Shown piece after piece: positions 13,170-64,000 of a stretch of DNA of 64,000 bases. The number at the start of each line of letters is the position of its first letter. The first letter of the stretch is position 1. Both the position numbers and the translations under genes were made by a program. The notes under the pieces are model-generated. The model saw nothing but the letters and a program-made list of their open reading frames with translations. It did no database searches and was not told where the DNA came from. Location of the stretch: positions 2,418,001-2,482,000 of the forward strand of contig CATNEN010000030.1 in assembly GCA_950097015.1 (NCBI GenBank). The letters run 5' to 3'. Source of the DNA: Macrostomum hystrix (taxonomy: Eukaryota > Animalia > Platyhelminthes).

Positions 13170-16100
13170 CAGGACCAATCAGCTAAACTTCCTTATTCTT
13201 GACCAATCAGCTGATCTTCCTTATTCTTGACCAATCAGCTGATCTTCCTTATTCTTGACCAATCAGCTGATCTTCCTTATTCTTGACCAATCAGCTGATC
13301 TTCCTTATTTTTGACCAATCAGCTGATCTTCCTTATTCTTGATCAATCAGCTAAACTTCCTTATTCTTGACCAATCAGCTGATCTTCCTTATTTTTGACC
13401 AATCAGCTGATCTTCCTTATTCTTGACCAATCAGCTGATCTTCCTTATTCTTGACCAATCAGCTGATCTTCCTTATTCTTGACCAATCAGCTGATCTTAC
13501 TTATTCTTGACCAATCAGCTGATCTTCCTTATTCTTGACCAATCAGCTGATCTTCCTTATTTTTGACCAATCAGCTGATCTTCCTTATTCTTGACCAATC
13601 AGCTGATCTTCCTTATTCTTGACCAATCAGCTGATCTTCCTTATTCTTGACCAATCAGCTGATCTTCCTTATTTTTGACCAATCAGCTGATCTTCCTTAT
13701 TCTTGACCAATCAGCTGATCTTCCTTATTCTTGACCAATCAGCTGATCTTACTTATTCTTGACCAATCAGCTGATCTTCCTTATTCTTGACCAATCAGCT
13801 GATCTTCCTTATTCTTGATCAATCAGCTAAACTTCCTTATTCTTGACCAACCAGCTGATCTTCCTTATTTTTGACCAATCAGCTGATCTTCCTTATTCTT
13901 GACCAATCAGCTGATCTTCCTTATTCTTGACCAATCAGCTGATCTTCCTTATTCTTGACCAATCAGCTGATCTTCCTTATTCTTGACCAATCAGCTGATC
14001 TTCCTTATTTTTGACCAATCAGCTGATCTTCCTTATTTTTGACCAATCAGCTGATCTTCCTTATTCTTGACCAATCAGCTGATCTTCCTTATTCTTGACC
14101 AATCAGCTGATCTTACTTATTCTTGACCAATCAGCTGATCTTACTTATTCTTGACCAATCAGCTGATATTCCTTATTCTTGACCAATCAGCTGATCTTCC
14201 TTATTCTTGACCAATCAGCTGATCTTCCTTATTCTTGATCAATCAGCTAAACTTCCTTATTCTTGACCAATCAGCTGATCTTCCTTATTCTTGACCAATC
14301 AGCTGATCTTCCTTATTCTTGACCAATCAGCTGATCTTCCTTATTCTTGACCAATCAGCTGATCTTCCTTATTTTTGACCAATCAGCTGATCTTCCTTAT
14401 TCTTGACCAATCAGCTGATCTTCCTTATTCTTGACCAATCAGCTGATCTTACTTATTCTTGACCAATCAGCTGATCTTCCTTATTTTTGACCAATCAGCT
14501 GATCTTCCTTATTTTTGACCAATCAGCTGATCTTCCTTATTCTTGACCAATCAGCTGATCTTCCTTATTCTTGACCAATCAGCTGATCTTACTTATTCTT
14601 GACCAATCAGCTGATCTTCCTTATTCTTGACCAATCAGCTGATCTTCCTTATTCTTCACCAATCAGCTGATCTTACTTATTCTTGACCAATCAGCTGATA
14701 TTCCTTATTCTTGACCAATCAGCTGATCTTACTTATTCTTGACCAATCAGCTGATCTTCCTTATTCTTGACCAATCAGCTGATCTTACTTATTCTTGACC
14801 AATCAGCTAAACTTCCTTATTCTTGACCAATCAGCTAAACTTCCTTATTCTTGACCAACCAGCTGATCTTCCTTATTCTTGACCAATCAGCTGATCTTCC
14901 TTATTCTTGATCAATCAGCTGATCTTCCTTATTCTTGATCAATCAGCTAAACTTCCTTATTCTTGACCAACCAGCTGATCTTCCTTATTTTTGACCAATC
15001 AGCTGATCTTCCTTATTCTTGACCAATCAGCTGATCTTCCTTATTCTTGACCAATCAGCTAAACTTCCTTATTTTTGACCAACCAGCTGATCTTCCTTAT
15101 TCTTGACCAATCAGCTGATCTTCCTTATTCTTGATCAATCAGCTGATCTTCCTTATTCTTGATCAATCAGCTAAACTTCCTTATTCTTGACCAACCAGCT
15201 GATCTTCCTTATTTTTGACCAATCAGCTGATCTTCCTTATTCTTGACCAATCAGCTGATCTTCCTTATTCTTGACCAATCAGCTGATCTTCCTTATTCTT
15301 GACCAATCAGCTGATCTTCCTTATTCTTGACCAATCAGCTGATCTTCCTTATTTTTGACCAATCAGCTGATCTTCCTTATTTTTGACCAATCAGCTGATC
15401 TTCCTTATTCTTGACCAATCAGCTGATCTTCCTTATTCTTGACCAATCAGCTGATCTTACTTATTCTTGACCAATCAGCTGATCTTACTTATTCTTGACC
15501 AATCAGCTGATATTCCTTATTCTTGACCAATCAGCTGATCTTCCTTATTCTTGACCAATCAGCTGATCTTCCTTATTCTTGATCAATCAGCTAAACTTCC
15601 TTATTCTTGACCAATCAGCTGATCTTCCTTATTCTTGACCAATCAGCTGATCTTCCTTATTCTTGACCAATCAGCTGATCTTACTTATTCTTGACCAATC
15701 AGCTGATCTTCCTTATTTTTGACCAATCAGCTGATCTTCCTTATTCTTGACCAATCAGCTGATCTTCCTTATTCTTGACCAATCAGCTGATCTTACTTAT
15801 TCTTGACCAATCAGCTGATCTTCCTTATTTTTGACCAATCAGCTGATCTTCCTTATTTTTGACCAATCAGCTGATCTTCCTTATTCTTGACCAATCAGCT
15901 GATCTTCCTTATTCTTGACCAATCAGCTGATCTTACTTATTCTTGACCAATCAGCTGATCTTCCTTATTCTTGACCAATCAGCTGATCTTCCTTATTCTT
16001 CACCAATCAGCTGATCTTACTTATTCTTGACCAATCAGCTGATATTCCTTATTCTTGACCAATCAGCTGATCTTACTTATTCTTGACCAATCAGCTGATC

Positions 16101-16462
16101 TTCCTTATTCTTGACCAATCAGCTGATCTTACTTATTCTTGACCAATCAGCTGATCTTCCTTATTCTTGACCAATCAGCTGATCTTCCTTATTCTTGACC
16201 AATCAGCTGATCTTCCTTATTCTTGACCAATAAGCTGATCTTCCTTATTCTTGACCAATCAGCTGATCTTCCTTATTCTTGACCAATCAGCTGATCTTCT
16301 TTATTCTTGACCAATCAGCTGATCTTACTTATTCTTGACCAATCAGCTGATCTTACTTATTCTTGACCAATCAGCTGATCTTCCTTATTCTTCACCAATC
16401 AGCTGATCTTACTTATTCTTGACCAATCAGCTGATATTCCTTATTCTTGACCAATCAGCTGA
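13170..16462. repeat. 28-bp satellite GACCAATCAGCTGATCTTCCTTATTCTT, about 117 copies
   Basis: Visible tandem units with recurring variant blocks. Confidence 0.97.
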
Positions 16463-17290
16463 TTCATGTGTCGCTTCCGAATTCGTAGTTAATCGCATGC
16501 AGGCCTTAACAGGTATCCAACTGATTTTTAACAGAAAACTTGAATCCTATTTTTTCAGATATTTGAAATAATTATTTTCGAAAGTGTCGCACATTGGTGT
16601 TGATATCGTATAGCTCAATTCTTGTACAGACAAACATGTGACCTTACTAAGAATAATTTGACTAAGGTTTTAAATAAATAAAAGTTCTGCTACGAATCAG
16701 TAGCTCATACAATAAACATCTTCCTCTGTAACACCAGAACTTTTTGTAATACATCCTACTACATATTCTCTACTAGCTACTAACAAAAATGAGTAGCATG
16801 AAGCGCCTATTTCGGATGCATCAAGCGGTGGTGGAGTTAAAAACTGGTTGTGCAAAAAAGAGATTTGCTAGTTTACACTCCGAGCTGCTCAGTCTTCTCT
16901 CCCTCTATGCTCAGTGCTCAACTTGGAGTCGAGACGCACAGCTTCGCCAAGTAGAACCCTTCTTAAGCACAATTTTAAGCACCGCTAAAGCTATGTTATT
17001 TTGTACATCTCAAACCGGTCTATACGGGTGGAGTACAGTGTTTTGAGCAGTATAGGAGGGTTCTTTCAGAAAATGAATTTCAGTGTACTTGTATTTTTCT
17101 ATCTGAAAACTCCTCTACCGTTAGCGCGCAGTAATTTAGCAGTAGGTTCAAAAAAATAAATTTCAATACTTCATATTAATTCATGATTAGGAACATTGTG
17201 CAGTAACCAAGCTTAAATAACTGCAGCAATACCGTTATTAGCAATAAAAAATTTTTCGTAGCTTTCAACTGGCTGTCTGAAAGAAGTTAA

Positions 17291-22137: not shown

Positions 22138-22154
22138 GTGAATTCTTGAGCCAA

Positions 22155-24260
22155 TCCCACCTCCGTGTCTTCTAGGGGCAACCCAACCCTCCTCCGTGTC
22201 TCTTAAGGGGAACCCACACTCCTCCGAGTGTTCTATGGCAATCCAACACCTCCTCCGTGCCTTCTTTGGCAACCCAACCCTTTTCCCTGTCTTCTATGAC
22301 AACCCAACCCTCCTCCATGTCTATTGGGACAACCCAACCCCTCCTCCATGTCTATTGGGACAACCCAACCCCTCCTCCATGTCTATTGGGACAACCCAAC
22401 CCCTCCTCCATGTCTATTGGGACAACCCAACCCCTCCTCCATGTCTATTGGGACAACCCAACCCTCCTTTATGTCTATTGGGACAACCCAACCCCTCCTC
22501 CATGTCTATTGGGACAACCCAACCCTCCTCCATGTCTATTGGGACAACCCAACCCCTCCTCCATGTCTATTGGGACAACCCAACCCTCCTTTATGTCTAT
22601 TGGGACAACCCAACCCCTCCTCCATGTCTATTGGGACAACCCAACCCTCCTCCATGTCTATTGGGACAACCCAACCCTCCTCCATGTCTATTGGGACAAC
22701 CCAACCCTCCTCCATGTCTATTGGGACAACCCAACCCCTCCTCCATGTCTATTGGGACAACCCAACCCTCCTCCATGTCTATTGGGACAACCCAACCCTC
22801 CTCCATGTCTATTGGGACAACCCAACCCTCCTCCATGTCTATTGGGACAACCCAACCCTCCTCCATGTCTATTGGGACAACCCAACCCTCCTCCATGTCT
22901 ATTGGGACAACCCAACCCTCTTCCATGTCTATTGGGACAACCCAACCCTCCTCCATGTCTATTGGGACAACCCAACCCTCCTCCATGTCTATTGGGACAA
23001 CCCAACCCTCCTCCATGTCTATTGGGACAACCCAACCCCTCCTCCATGTCTATTGGGACAACCCAACCCTTCTCCATGTCTATTGGGACAACCCAACCCT
23101 TCTCCATGTCTATTGGGACAACCCAACCCTCCTCCATGTCTATTGGGACAACCCAACCCTCCTCCATGTCTATTGGGACAACCCAACCCTCCTCCATGTC
23201 TATTGGGACAACCCAACCCTCCTCCATGTCTATTGGGACAACCCAACCCTCTTCCATGTCTATTGGGACAACCCAACCCTCCTCCATGTCTATTGGGACA
23301 ACCCAACCCTCCTCCATGTCTATTGGGACAACCCAACCCTCCTCCATGTCTATTGGGACAACCCAACCCTCCTCCATGTCTATTGGGACAACCCAACCCT
23401 CCTCCATGTCTATTGGGACAACCCAACCCTCTTCCATGTCTATTGGGACAACCCAACCCTCCTCCATGTCTATTGGGACAACCCAACCCTCCTCCATGTC
23501 TATTGGGACAACCCAACCCTCCTCCATGTCTATTGGGACAACCCAACCCCTCCTCCATGTCTATTGGGACAACCCAACCCCTCCTCCATGTCTATTGGGA
23601 CAACCCAACCCTCCTCCATGTCTATTGGGACAACCCAACCCCTCCTCCATGTCTATTGGGACAACCCAACCCTCCTCCATGTCTATTGGGACAACCCAAC
23701 CCTCCTCCATGTCTATTGGGACAACCTAACACTCCTCCATGTCTATTGGGACAACCCAACCCCTCCTCCATGTCTATTGGGACAACCCAACCCCTCCTCC
23801 ATGTCTATTGGGACAACCCAACCCCTCCTCCATGTCTATTGGGACAACCCAACCCTCTTCCATGTCTATTGGGACAACCCAACCCCTCCTCCATGTCTAT
23901 TGGGACAACCTAACACTCCTCCATGTCTATTGGGACAACCCAACCCTCCTCCATGTCTATTGGGACAACCCAACCCCTCCTCCATGTCTATTGGGACAAA
24001 CCAACCCCTCCTCCATGTCTATTGGGACAACCCAACCCCTCCTCCATGTCTATTGGGACAACCCAACCCCTCCTCCATGTCTATTGGGACAACCCAACCC
24101 CTCCTCCATGTCTATTGGGACAACCCAACCCCTCCTCCATGTCTATTGGGACAACCCAACCCTCCTCCATGTCTATTGGGACAACCCAACCCTCCTCCAT
24201 GTCTATTGGGACAACCCAACCCCTCCTCCATGTCTATTGGGACAACCCAACCCTCCTCCG
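22155..24260. repeat. 30/31-bp minisatellite CCAACCCTCCTCCATGTCTATTGGGACAAC
   Basis: Visible units; source of the spurious 490-690 aa ORFs. Confidence 0.97.
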
Positions 24261-33243: not shown

Positions 33244-33271
33244 CAAAAAATCCAAAGCAGGATTTGAAAAA

Positions 33272-33381
33272 GCGCCTATAGCCTAATGGCTAGAGCGCTA
33301 GGCTAGACTCTACTGATGAGCTCCAAAAAGTGCGAAACGCGTCTGGAGTTGTCTTGGTTCGAATCCTGATTTCAATTTTTT
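33272..33381 (+). ncRNA. tRNA-derived Pol III unit containing type I hammerhead ribozyme (copy 1)
   Basis: A box TAGCCTAATGG 33279-89; CTGATGA 33313-19; stem II GCTC/GTGC (one mismatch); GAAAC-GC-GTC; stem I ACTCTA/TGGAGT; B box GGTTCGAATCC; T6 run. Confidence 0.8.
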
Positions 33382-33995
33382 CTATACATATCGGCATCGA
33401 TTCCAACATTATATTTTTTAAATTCAATGGGCAGTGTCCTCTCTCTCTCCCTCTCTCTCCCTCCCTCTCTCTCTCCCGCTCTCTCTCCCTGCCTCTTTCT
33501 CTCGCTCTCTCTCCCCCTCTCTCTCCCGCTCTCTCTCCCTGCCTCTCTCTCTCCCTCTCTCTCTCCCGCTCTCTCTCCCGCTCTCTGTCGCTCTCTCTCG
33601 CTCTCTCTCCCGCTCTCTCCCGCTCTCTGTCGCTCTCTCTCGCTCTCTCTCGCCTTCTCTCTCTCTGCTTCTCTCCTTCGCTGCTCTCTCTCGCTCTCTC
33701 TCCCGCTCTCTCTCCCGCTCTCTGTCGCTCTCTCTCTCCCTCTCTCCCTCTTTTTCTCTCTCTCTCCCGCTCTCTGTCGCTCTCTCTCCCTCTCTCTACT
33801 GATGAGCTCCAAAAAGAGCGAAACGCGTCTGGAGTTGCCTTGGTTCGAATCCTGAGTTCATTTTTTTCGATACATATCGGAATCGATTCCAACATTAGAT
33901 TTTTGAAATTCAATGGGCAGTGTCCTCTCTCCTCTCTCCCGCTCTCTCTCCCTCTCTCTCTCCCTCTCTGTCGCTCTCTCTCTGTCTCTCTGTTT
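33307..33995 (+). mobile_element. Tandem retrozyme-like repeat: two ~140-bp hammerhead units, each followed by a CT microsatellite
   Basis: Direct repeat 33307-33440 / 33793-33930, period 486 bp. Confidence 0.7.
33794..33836 (+). ncRNA. Type I hammerhead ribozyme (copy 2)
   Basis: CTCTA-CTGATGA-GCTC caaaaa GAGC-GAAAC GC GTC^-TGGAG: perfect stem II, 5-bp stem I, palindromic ACGCGT stem III. Confidence 0.85.
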
Positions 33996-34601
33996 TCAAG
34001 GTTTGCGAGCAGAGAACTTTACGAGCTCTGGGAAGTTATGCTCGTTCGCTTCCCAGAGCACAGGGGAGAGGAGAATTTAAATGGCTTTGCTAGGCTGAGT
34101 CAGGATGTAGGAGTCAGTTTGCTGACGGATTAAAAAGTTTCTCTGTGGCTATGGAAAGATGAGCTTTAGAGCAAACATATGCTTCCCCCCTCCCCCAATG
34201 TACAGCATTTATCAGTGACATTTGGCCCACTAACTTGTAAGGGAATACAGCATGTCAGTAATTTATCAGCAAATGCCCAACTAAAAGTCGAACCCGACCC
34301 GGCTAAATCCCAGAGGACTAGACTGCCGACTCGAATGTCAAGCCAGCTGAAAGCCAAATTCTAATTGGGACTTCGATTTAAAAAGTTAGTTAGAAATCTC
34401 CACCCAATGAAAAGTATATCTCATTCTCCGGCACATGCAACCTTCTAGAACCCTCAGAATAGTTCTCACCTAAAGAGCAATTTATCTATTTGAATCCGAT
34501 AATTAACAAATAAAACTCGTCAAATAAAAAAAATCTTTTTCCTAGAAAATGTTCTGGTTCTAGGAAAGCCGATTTTATCGTAAAATTATTTCCGGATTAG
34601 T

Positions 34602-61103: not shown

Positions 61104-61244
61104 CTAGTGTTTGGCGAGGATAAAAAAAATATTTTATTTTCTCACGATACTACTGATTGAGAACCGAGTAATACACGATGAACCAAAAAGAAACTAATTT
61201 ATCACTTTCTATAGTTTCATTAGGCAATTGTTTGGAGTTTGATA

Positions 61245-63560
61245 AGGTGATGTTCTAGGGTTTGATGAGATGATTATCTAGGGTTTGATGAGATGATTAT
61301 CTAGAGTTCGATGAGGTGATGTTCTAGGGTTCGATGAGGTGATGTTCTAGGGTTCGATGAGGTGATGTTCTAGGGTTTGATGAGATGATTATCTAGGGTT
61401 TGATGAGGTGATGTTCTAGGGTTCGATGAGGTGATGTTCTAGGGTTTGATGAGATGATGTTCTAGGGTTCGATGAGGTGATGTTCTAGGGTTTGATGAGG
61501 TGATTATCTAGGGTTTGATGAGGTGATGTTCTAGGGTTCGATGAGGTGATGTTCTAGGGTTTGATGAGGTGATTATCTAGGGTTTGATGAGGTGATGTTC
61601 TAGGGTTTGATGAGATGATGTTCTAGGGTTCGATGAGGTGATGTTCTAGGGTTCGATGAGGTGATGTTCTAGGGTTCGATGAGGTGATGTTCTAGGGTTC
61701 GATGAGGTGATGTTCTAGGGTTTGATGAGATGATTATCTAGGGTTTGATGAGATGATTATCTAAGGTTCGATGAGGTGATGTTCTAGGGTTCGATGAGGT
61801 GATGTTCTAGGGTTTGATGAGATTATTATCTAGGGTTCGATGAGGTGATGCTCTAGGGTTCGATGAGGTGATGTTCTAGGGTTTGATGAGATGATTATCT
61901 AGGGTTTGATGAGATGATTATCTAAGGTTCGATGAGGTGATGTTCTAGGGTTTGATGAGATGATTATCTAGGGTTCGATGAGGTGATGTTCTAGGGTTTG
62001 ATGAGATGATTATCTAGGGTTTGATGAGGTGATGTTCTAGGGTTCGATGAGGTGATGTTCTAGGGTTTGATGAGATGATGTTCTAGGGTTCGATGAGGTG
62101 ATGTTCTAGGGTTTGATGAGGTGATTATCTAGGGTTTGATGAGGTGATGTTCTAGGGTTCGATGAGGTGATGTTCTAGGGTTTGATGAGGTGATTATCTA
62201 GGGTTTGATGAGGTGATGTTCTAGGGTTTGATGAGATGATGTTCTAGGGTTCGATGAGGTGATGTTCTAGGGTTCGATGAGGTGATGTTCTAGGGTTCGA
62301 TGAGGTGATGTTCTAGGGTTCGATGAGGTGATGTTCTAGGGTTTGATGAGATGATTATCTAGGGTTTGATGAGATGATTATCTAAGGTTCGATGAGGTGA
62401 TGTTCTAGGGTTCGATGAGGTGATGTTCTAGGGTTTGATGAGATTATTATCTAGGGTTCGATGAGGTGATGCTCTAGGGTTCGATGAGGTGATGTTCTAG
62501 GGTTTGATGAGATGATTATCTAGGGTTTGATGAGATGATTATCTAAGGTTCGATGAGGTGATGTTCTAGGGTTTGATGAGATGATTATCTAGGGTTCGAT
62601 GAGGTGATGTTCTAGGGTTTGATGAGATGATTATCTAGGGTTCGATGAGGTGATGTTCTAGGGTTCGATGAGGTGATGTTCTAGGGTTCGATGAGGTGAT
62701 GCTCTAGGGTTCGATGAGGTGATGTTCTAGGGTTCGATGAGGTGATGTTCTAGGGTTTGATGAGATGATTATCTAGGGTTTGATGAGATGATTATCTAAG
62801 GTTCGATGAGGTGATGTTCTAGGGTTCGATGAGGTGATGTTCTAGGGTTTGATGAGATTATTATCTAGGGTTCGATGAGGTGATGCTCTAGGGTTCGATG
62901 AGGTGATGTTCTAGGGTTTGATGAGATGATTATCTAGGGTTTGATGAGATGATTATCTAAGGTTCGATGAGGTGATGTTCTAGGGTTTGATGAGATGATG
63001 TTCTAGGGTTTGATGAGATTATTATCTAGGGTTCGATGAGGTGATGCTCTAGGGTTCGATGAGGTGATGTTCTAGGGTTTGATGAGATGATTATCTAGGG
63101 TTTGATGAGATGATTATCTAAGGTTCGATGAGGTGATGTTCTAGGGTTTGATGAGATGATTATCTAGGGTTCGATGAGGTGATGTTCTAGGGTTTGATGA
63201 GATGATTATCTAGGGTTCGATGAGGTGATGTTCTAGGGTTCGATGAGGTGATGTTCTAGGGTTCGATGAGGTGATGCTCTAGGGTTCGATGAGGTGATGT
63301 TCTAGGGTTCGATGAGGTGATGTTCTAGGGTTCGATGAGGTGATGTTCTAGGGTTCGATGAGGTGATGTTCTAGGGTTCGATGAGGTGATGTTCTAGGGT
63401 TCGATGAGGTGATGTTCTAGGGTTCGATGAGGTGATGTTCTAGGGTTCGATGAGGTGATGCTCTAGGGTTCGATGAGGTGATGTTCTAGGGTTTGATGAG
63501 ATGATTATCTAAGGTTCGATGAGGTGATGTTCTAGGGTTTCATGAGATGATTATCTAGGG
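61245..63560. repeat. 23-bp satellite GATGAGGTGATGTTCTAGGGTTC
   Basis: Visible; in a coronin intron, with recurring variant blocks. Confidence 0.97.
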
Positions 63561-64000
63561 TTTGATGAGGCAATTTTCTCGGGTTTGATGGTACGTTTCG
63601 AACAGATTACAGTCTTCTATCAAGAGCATCTGTTGGCCTAAAAATAAAAAAAAATTCAAAACATATACACTACTTTCTACTACACAAATCTTGCGAAAGA
63701 TCCTCAGTCAAAATGGCTACAGTGCAGAAACGGCCGATCAGCTTGGAGTGAGTCAGCAGCGGCTATTTCAGAGTTTGATAAAGATTTTTAATTGCAACCA
63801 ACGGAGTTTAACCTAGAATGTGCCAGCTACGGGACACATAGTGTTTACACAGACAGACACTGGCGTTCAGCCATTCCAGAGCGAAATTGCTTATGAAAAA
63901 AAGTGCATTACACTGTAGCGATTTCTGTTAGCTTTAAATTTAAACTATTTGTTGCCGCAATTACTAAACTACAACTACGCTCGTAGAACTAAGGAGTAGA

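Follow-up and report, generated by a model that had tools for sequence, protein, structure and literature searches.

Two hammerhead ribozyme motifs that lie 486 nt apart on the same strand of a Macrostomum hystrix contig raise the question of whether they constitute a processing unit from which a small RNA is released, or whether they stand next to each other for another reason. The motifs were found within a window of 64,000 nucleotides (the whole stretch of DNA analysed here, on contig C30), which belongs to a genome of 220 Mb in 42 contigs. A preliminary description of this DNA considered the pair as a double hammerhead that would process a transcript into a 486-nt linear or circular RNA.

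A pattern search of the 64-kb window for CTGATGAG-N12-CGAAACGCGTC returned exactly two matches, both on the + strand (33313-33343 and 33799-33829), while about 0.01 matches would be expected by chance, and the B-box-like sequence GGTTCGAATCC is located downstream of each of them. These two exact matches, together with a direct repeat of 138 nt that has the same 486-nt spacing (33308-33445 versus 33794-33931, 94% identity), confirm the two hammerheads with the palindrome ACGCGT as stem III that had been described before. The Rfam model Hammerhead_HH9 matched both copies with E values of ~1e-6 and scores of 33.2 and 32.0 bits, below its gathering score of 52, and no Rfam model reached its gathering score anywhere in the window. 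The match of copy 2 to this model is local only (model positions 14-59); typical copies of the family described below span positions 1-77 at 38-42 bits. The two motifs are organized as follows:

33307 to 33349, + strand: hammerhead 1, with a 6-bp stem I (33307-33312 with 33344-33349), core and stem II at 33313-33336 (4-bp helix II with a U.U mismatch), ACGCGT stem III at 33337-33342 and C17 at 33343; cleavage is predicted between 33343 and 33344.
33794 to 33835, + strand: hammerhead 2, with a 5-bp stem I (sixth pair U.U), a perfect 4-bp stem II, ACGCGT stem III at 33823-33828 and C17 at 33829; cleavage is predicted between 33829 and 33830.

The catalytic core is complete in both motifs, including CUGANGA, GAAA and a cleavable C17 after helix III, and the predicted cleavage sites are separated by 486 nt. 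In both copies stem III reads A15.1-C-G-C-G-U16.1, which in cis offers only 2 bp around a 2-nt loop, so that helix III could form only as a 6-bp palindrome between molecules or between copies. The assignment of the motifs to the dimer type was correct, since in animals a type-I hammerhead whose palindromic helix III is short needs a second copy and acts as a dimer (PMC4209133). The perfect stem II of copy 2 was also found as described, and the caveats raised at that time hold as well, namely the mismatch in stem II of copy 1, the lack of an A box in copy 2 and the presence of T6 runs, which are located at 33385-33390 and 33415-33420. The U.U mismatch of copy 1 corresponds to a private A-to-T change at position u183 of the repeat unit defined below, where A is present in 60 of 60 other copies.

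The sequence around hammerhead 1 belongs to a dispersed repeat family. A segment of 168 nt around this motif gave at least 40 full-length matches with 94-96% identity on many contigs, and the genome contains 92 hammerheads of the family subtype when up to two mismatches are allowed and 132 copies of the 3'-end motif of the family. All HH9-like matches in the genome belong to this family. The repeat unit was taken to be the stretch of 336 nt that naturally separates two cleavage sites at one locus (L028), and 93 copies from loci chosen by motif were mapped by BLAST onto a reference copy (L008:1380-1715), whose positions are given here with the prefix u.

The 336-nt unit is non-coding, with no ORF. 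It contains decayed A and B boxes of the tRNA type that enclose a canonical animal type-I hammerhead, as well as a segment complementary in sequence to the 3' body and a CT-rich tail. The unit body ends in ...GGGCAGTGT and is followed by a conserved CT tail of ~42 nt, and this 3' end is constant among the 93 mapped copies. Truncation at the 5' end was observed in 61 of the 93 copies, and the other 32 are apparently full-length; the conserved tail end precedes all 32, which indicates that these copies are really more than one unit long and that the unit is circularly permuted. The family is young, with 95-99% identity among its copies.

Partial tandems are a recurrent feature of the family, as a 5'-truncated partial unit lies directly upstream of a full unit in 11 of the first 50 family loci. 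Close pairs of hammerheads are limited to eight in the genome, with spacings of 336 nt (three loci), 323, 316, 300, 486 (the pair in the window) and 503 nt, and the genome search for this hammerhead subtype found no array in which three or more follow each other at unit length. Canonical dimers with the 336-nt spacing occur, for example, at C25:3259677/3260013 and C39:11766696/11767032. Within the partial tandems L016 and L034, the units differ at only 1-3 positions and have rare variants in common, a pattern of sequence that fits a single copying event. The constant 3' end, the variable 5' truncation and the partial tandems are the footprint left when a multimeric or circular RNA is copied by target-primed reverse transcription, which is the model proposed for animal non-LTR retrozymes (PMC7229834).

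Other loci show further arrangements. The canonical 336-nt dimer L034 (contig C33:42000-44800) carries a C-to-T change in helix III (GAAATGCGTC) in both of its hammerheads, which leaves a wobble-paired 6-bp dimer helix possible and marks a single-event tandem. At L036 (contig C38:21522600-21529700), five copies, all cut at u112, are part of a higher-order tandem repeat in which spacings of ~1589 and 680-690 bp alternate, corresponding to a segmental amplification with two copies per period.

When the window was mapped onto the family unit, the region containing both hammerheads resolved into four consecutive features:

33254 to 33437, + strand: copy 1 of the 336-nt hammerhead retroelement, truncated at its 5' end (u106-289); it includes TAGCCTAATGG as an A-box-like sequence (33282-33292), hammerhead 1, GGTTCGAATCC as a B-box-like sequence (33356-33366) and the T6 runs.
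33438 to 33797, + strand: CT-rich minisatellite of 360 nt with a period of 10-12 nt (Tandem Repeats Finder), made of the units CCCGCTCTCT, GTCGCTCTCT and similar ones.
33794 to 33923, + strand: copy 2, which belongs to the same family, is truncated further from the 5' end (u160-289) and starts inside the 5' strand of stem I.
33924 to 33991, + strand: the canonical CT tail that copy 2 itself carries (~42 nt) and, after it, what is left of the interrupted array.

By BLAST, copy 1 aligned with u106-295 of the reference at 95% identity and copy 2 with u160-295 at 98% identity. Copy 1 is flanked on its 5' side by unique sequence that is not CT-rich, and it carries eight variants that are rare or missing in 60 other family copies. 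Copy 2 has only two variants off the family majority, and it lacks both the A box and the distal part of stem I. Its starting point, u160 (CTCTA), is a recurrent truncation point with four independent cases and shows microhomology to CT targets, and its tail agrees with the conserved tail of the family as seen in the first 30 loci. In the 136 nt that they share, the two copies differ at eight positions and have no rare variant in common, resembling in this respect other irregular pairs (L033 and L035) and differing from the tandems left by a single event. Over the same 136 nt, copy 1 departs from the family majority at six positions and copy 2 at two, an age gap that is not significant. Both copies have the A at u179, which marks a minor subfamily and was seen in 10 of 60 other copies. 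The interval between the hammerheads is the CT array and is devoid of u1-159, which holds the rod partner and the half of the unit with the A box. Regarding coding potential, no Pfam domain was detected in ORFs within ~5 kb of the locus, and long ORFs running across 33290-34133 were rejected as artefacts of the stop-poor CT tract.

The CT array at 33438-33797 starts as the tail of copy 1 and was probably the target of the second insertion. A locus-specific 19-mer, CTCTCTGTCGCTCTCTCTC, occurs four times in the array upstream of copy 2 and once just past the tail of copy 2, where the occurrence at 33964-33982 repeats that at 33770-33788. The 11-nt core of this 19-mer is absent elsewhere in the window and from 75 other family loci examined. 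The two occurrences could be a target-site duplication, but CTCTCTGTCGCTCTCTCTC is itself a repeat unit of the array, and its presence on both sides of copy 2 is no proof of such a duplication.

The association with CT-rich DNA extends to the family as a whole, which sits preferentially inside CT-rich minisatellites. Nearly all of its 5' junctions adjoin CT-rich satellites, and in 48 of 69 loci the insert is flanked on either side by an identical locus-specific CT-rich repeat; the two flanks of the same locus have a median of 12 10-mers in common, versus 0 between different loci. One copy (L010, contig C38:31507889-31511056) is inserted in non-CT DNA and is bordered by an unusually long target-site duplication, ~75 bp of unique sequence with two mismatches. 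The 64-kb window itself is extremely rich in minisatellites, with 56 Tandem Repeats Finder rows (some of them overlapping) and periods mostly of 14-92 bp, including several arrays larger than 2 kb (e.g., 13173-16463, 22151-24259 and 61237-63590). A coronin-type WD40 exon was noted near 60.4-61.1 kb of the window.

Considering these observations, we estimate at roughly 0.72 the probability that the locus represents two dead-on-arrival copies of one retroelement family and not a designed ribozyme dimer. The anatomy of the locus, the mapping of the copies, the sharing of variants, the repeats in the flanks and the predicted energetics come directly from the analysis. To judge from the sequence, the most likely history is that one CT-rich array received two independent insertions, both of them 5'-truncated, with the second close to its downstream end. 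The preliminary description was right in recognizing a retrozyme-type element, as the retroelement to which both motifs belong carries a ribozyme and is of the retrozyme or Sm-alpha kind (PMC7229834, PMC2770079). Its proposal of a 486-nt monomer is not supported, given that the family unit has 336 nt, the downstream copy is truncated and the two copies lack common rare variants. The CT tract as part of a 486-nt unit was likewise discarded, since a comparable spacing (503 nt) exists in only one other pair, where the interval differs in composition.

We infer the RNA intermediates, the enzyme and the order of the insertions as follows. A 336-nt monomer RNA would be freed by the double hammerhead and joined by tRNA ligase, as in animal non-LTR retrozymes, and copied by a Penelope-like or other reverse transcriptase. 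Locus-specific CT-rich minisatellites act as targets, because most copies lie inside them. The older copy, cut at u106, would have been placed at the edge of a CT-rich array, and the younger copy, cut at u160, where CTCT offers microhomology with the target, would have landed later in the array, 486 nt downstream. Two independent insertions make the 486-nt spacing accidental, and the 5' truncation of the downstream copy and an interval without u1-159 could not result from a single run of reverse transcription on a multimer or circle. Against the two insertions, the A at u179 common to both copies would also fit an early local duplication, and no autonomous partner was found in the sampled loci that is alike beyond the ribozyme core.

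The search for such a partner covered several kinds of sequences. Comparison of the unit by BLAST with four GIY-YIG loci and 10 other hammerhead-bearing ends showed likeness only in CT tracts or in the ribozyme core. Twenty loci with the 3'-end motif outside the hammerhead list were all short family copies, 19 of 20 with a truncated 5' end, and at none of them did the motif terminate a longer element. Additionally, a scan of the genome with RVT_1 gave ~2,000 reverse-transcriptase candidates, none of which adjoins family copies in a way that could link them. The Penelope-type hammerhead families of this genome all use GAAACGCGUC as helix III, the same palindrome as the 336-nt family. The literature and the footprint of the insertions lead us to infer that a Penelope-like element mobilises the family, and a link of non-LTR retrozymes to Penelope-like elements, or mobilisation by them, has been proposed in a preprint (Li, Clavereau and Pollet, 2026; bioRxiv 10.64898/2026.07.22.740005).

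Regarding the Penelope-type elements themselves, at least eight hammerhead families were distinguished (examples L077-L086), with CUGAAGA cores, differing helix II and the same GAAACGCGUC end, and the hammerhead ends of L082, L083, L085 and L086 run into CCCTAA telomere repeats. Penelope-like fragments with the end of a GIY-YIG ORF were also seen in L052-L054 (starting at contigs C33:1846087, C3:9326975 and C7:2133151), where a short (CT)n tract comes just after the ORF and a minimal hammerhead ~250 nt downstream; in L052 a long satellite with a 22-nt period follows.

The 5' ends of truncated copies are not evenly distributed along the unit. They pile up at u180-196, in the 3' half of the hammerhead as far as the cleavage site (33328-33344 in the equivalent part of copy 1); 15 of 54 independent truncated copies start there, compared with ~3 expected, and only 2-4 of them start exactly at the cleavage site. 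Either stalling of the reverse transcriptase at the folded ribozyme or templates that had already been cleaved may account for this pile-up. A bolder and rather doubtful possibility is that the family, though not this locus, is an active circular-RNA retrozyme that homes to CT minisatellites by priming on its CU tract, and whose cleaved ends may mimic tRNA halves for tRNA ligase through the location of the hammerhead between tRNA promoter boxes. If this were true, the window would record two successive insertions in one array, and the pile-up would be a genomic footprint of folded or cleaved ribozymes during reverse transcription.

A second way to obtain two copies in one array is local duplication, with unequal crossing-over or replication slippage in the CT array as the process that would have produced copy 2 out of copy 1. 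The marker A at u179 in both copies is compatible with such an event, the genome is very prone to minisatellite expansion, and true local duplicates exist elsewhere in the family, recognizable by common rare variants or by the same truncation and flank (L032, L058, L072 and L036). However, the private variants of copy 1 in the shared region are all missing from copy 2, and true duplicates keep their truncation point, whereas the window copies start at u106 and u160, respectively. Moreover, copy 2 has its own canonical tail, and u160 recurs as an independent truncation point. For these reasons we regard a local duplication as unlikely, and two independent insertions remain the preferred explanation.

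It could also be argued that copy 1 alone is functional, as a small Pol III gene for a tRNA-like RNA of ~118 nt (roughly 33272-33390) with a hammerhead that acts in trans or is processed in trans, and that copy 2 is debris. The A and B boxes present in copy 1 match the tRNA-type consensus, a T6 run lies 42 nt past the cleavage site, and the Sm-alpha elements of schistosomes are tRNA-derived (PMC2770079). Nonetheless, neither ARAGORN nor the Rfam tRNA model detected a tRNA fold at copy 1, which is itself 5'-truncated and has the mismatch in stem II. Besides, the boxes belong to the mobile 336-nt unit, whose constant CT-tail 3' end lies beyond the T6 run (u228-233), and a Pol III transcript that stops at this run could not have templated the family copies. 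An independent Pol III gene at copy 1 is consequently improbable, and we return to the reading of both copies as insertions.

Whether the pair could nevertheless work as a ribozyme dimer was approached through predictions of RNA folding, which ignore tertiary contacts, proteins and co-transcriptional folding. Two natural 336-nt monomers had predicted energies of -112.7 kcal/mol (z -3.3) and -120.3 kcal/mol (z -4.4) and adopt a predicted rod, formed by pairing of the 5' segment with the 3' body, with the ends joined by helix I. The 486-nt RNA of the window reached only -45 kcal/mol (z -1.0), with no significant predicted structure. In the 336-nt dimers L016, L028 and L034, forcing the nested double hammerhead (with helix I formed in trans, the two helix II hairpins and ACGCGU as a 6-bp duplex) cost 1.8-5.2 kcal/mol over the free ensemble, and in L028 it was the minimum-energy structure. 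This low predicted cost fits the published rule for animal type-I hammerheads, according to which those whose palindromic helix III is short work as dimers (PMC4209133). The same structure in the window pair cost 22.2 kcal/mol, owing to pairing of the long CT tract with purine stretches in the ribozymes.

These predictions bear on the earlier proposal of self-processing into a 486-nt linear or circular RNA, which is not supported. The intact core nucleotides of both motifs and their dimer-type helix III speak in its favour, as do the canonical dimers of the family, predicted to form the same double hammerhead, and the cofold of two copy-2 domains, in which a 6-bp intermolecular helix III and stem I in trans are formed. 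On the other hand, the ribozymes are impaired in comparison with those of the family: copy 1 has a mismatch in its 4-bp helix II, and copy 2 has no distal helix I and a U.U at the sixth helix I pair. The energetic cost and the predicted lack of structure in the product also make self-processing of this pair unlikely according to the models, and the T6 runs, the first of them 42 nt past site 1, would stop Pol III well before copy 2. As for read-through, no recognizable gene able to give such a transcript was found within ~5 kb of the locus. A transcript over both sites would therefore be cut inefficiently at best, and a pyrimidine-rich circle of 486 nt would not be expected. Low-level cleavage, or dimers formed in trans between the window hammerheads and other family transcripts, is possible. 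With a spacing and a content that differ from those of the family unit, a read-through transcript that folds into a double hammerhead via ACGCGU, is cut after 33343 and 33829 and yields a 486-nt RNA, maybe circular, is a highly improbable outcome at this locus.

The locus itself is of little importance, as the pair would be an accident of insertion, and it illustrates that closely placed ribozyme motifs need not be a processing unit and that their spacing must be checked against the unit of the family to which they belong. The 336-nt family, in turn, is a compact and tractable hammerhead retroelement in which canonical 336-nt dimers can be contrasted with accidental pairs. The ribozyme between A and B boxes, the strong association with CT minisatellites, the predicted double-hammerhead dimers and the pile-up of 5' ends near the cleavage site are all worthy of study, and the family could help to test the interplay of ribozyme dimers, circular RNAs and microsatellite targeting in animal retrozymes.

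No mention of hammerhead ribozymes in Macrostomum was found among the papers searched. The family was compared with systems described in other animals. The Rfam family Hammerhead_HH9 (RF02275) is intronic in amniotes, and the core, helix II and loop II of its consensus are identical to those of copy 2 (CUGAUGAGCUCCAAAAAGAGCGAAAC). However, the Macrostomum family scores 32-42 bits against this model, below the threshold of 52, has a helix III that is 5 nt shorter, and is a mobile repeat and not a conserved intron.

The hammerheads in the terminal repeats of Penelope-like elements (PMC4209133) resemble the family in the short palindromic helix III, with GAAACGCGUC, in the partial tandems and in the 5' truncation. 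In contrast, the family has the canonical core CUGAUGA, a helix II of 4 bp and a loop of 6 nt, instead of the minimal CUGAAGA-U form, and its unit carries no reverse transcriptase or GIY-YIG ORF; the sampled Penelope-like ends are like it only in the ribozyme core.

Sm-alpha and Sj-alpha are SINE-like, tRNA-derived schistosome elements with a hammerhead (Ferbeyre et al., 1998; Laha et al., 2000; PMC2770079, PMC6155905), and Sm-alpha is ~335 bp long, dispersed, and present in more than 10,000 copies with a canonical type-I hammerhead (PMC2770079). The 336-nt family resembles these elements, by description, in its flatworm host, size, tRNA-type boxes, dispersal and type-I hammerhead, but its copy number is ~130 in comparison with the more than 10,000 of Sm-alpha.

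Animal non-LTR retrozymes are small non-coding repeats of 170-400 bp arranged head to tail, each with a type-I hammerhead; their monomers are highly base-paired, and platyhelminths are among the phyla that carry them (PMC7229834). The 336-nt family is like them in the small non-coding unit, the type-I hammerhead, the head-to-tail arrangement and the predicted strong base pairing of the monomer. It differs in that it occurs mostly as one and a fraction units, with at most two hammerheads per locus and no long arrays, as well as in its residence in CT-rich minisatellites and in having the hammerhead between tRNA-type A and B boxes. As to the head-to-tail repetition of retrozymes, the family shows it in part, with five pairs at spacings of 316-336 nt and a partial extra unit at 11 loci, whereas the window pair departs from it, with 486 nt instead of the 336-nt unit and a CT array without u1-159 as its interval, and its 486-nt RNA is predicted to lack the strong self-pairing of retrozyme monomers (z -1.0). 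Overall, animal non-LTR retrozymes, together with the elements Sm-alpha and Sj-alpha, are the closest known kinds to the hammerhead retroelement found in this genome.
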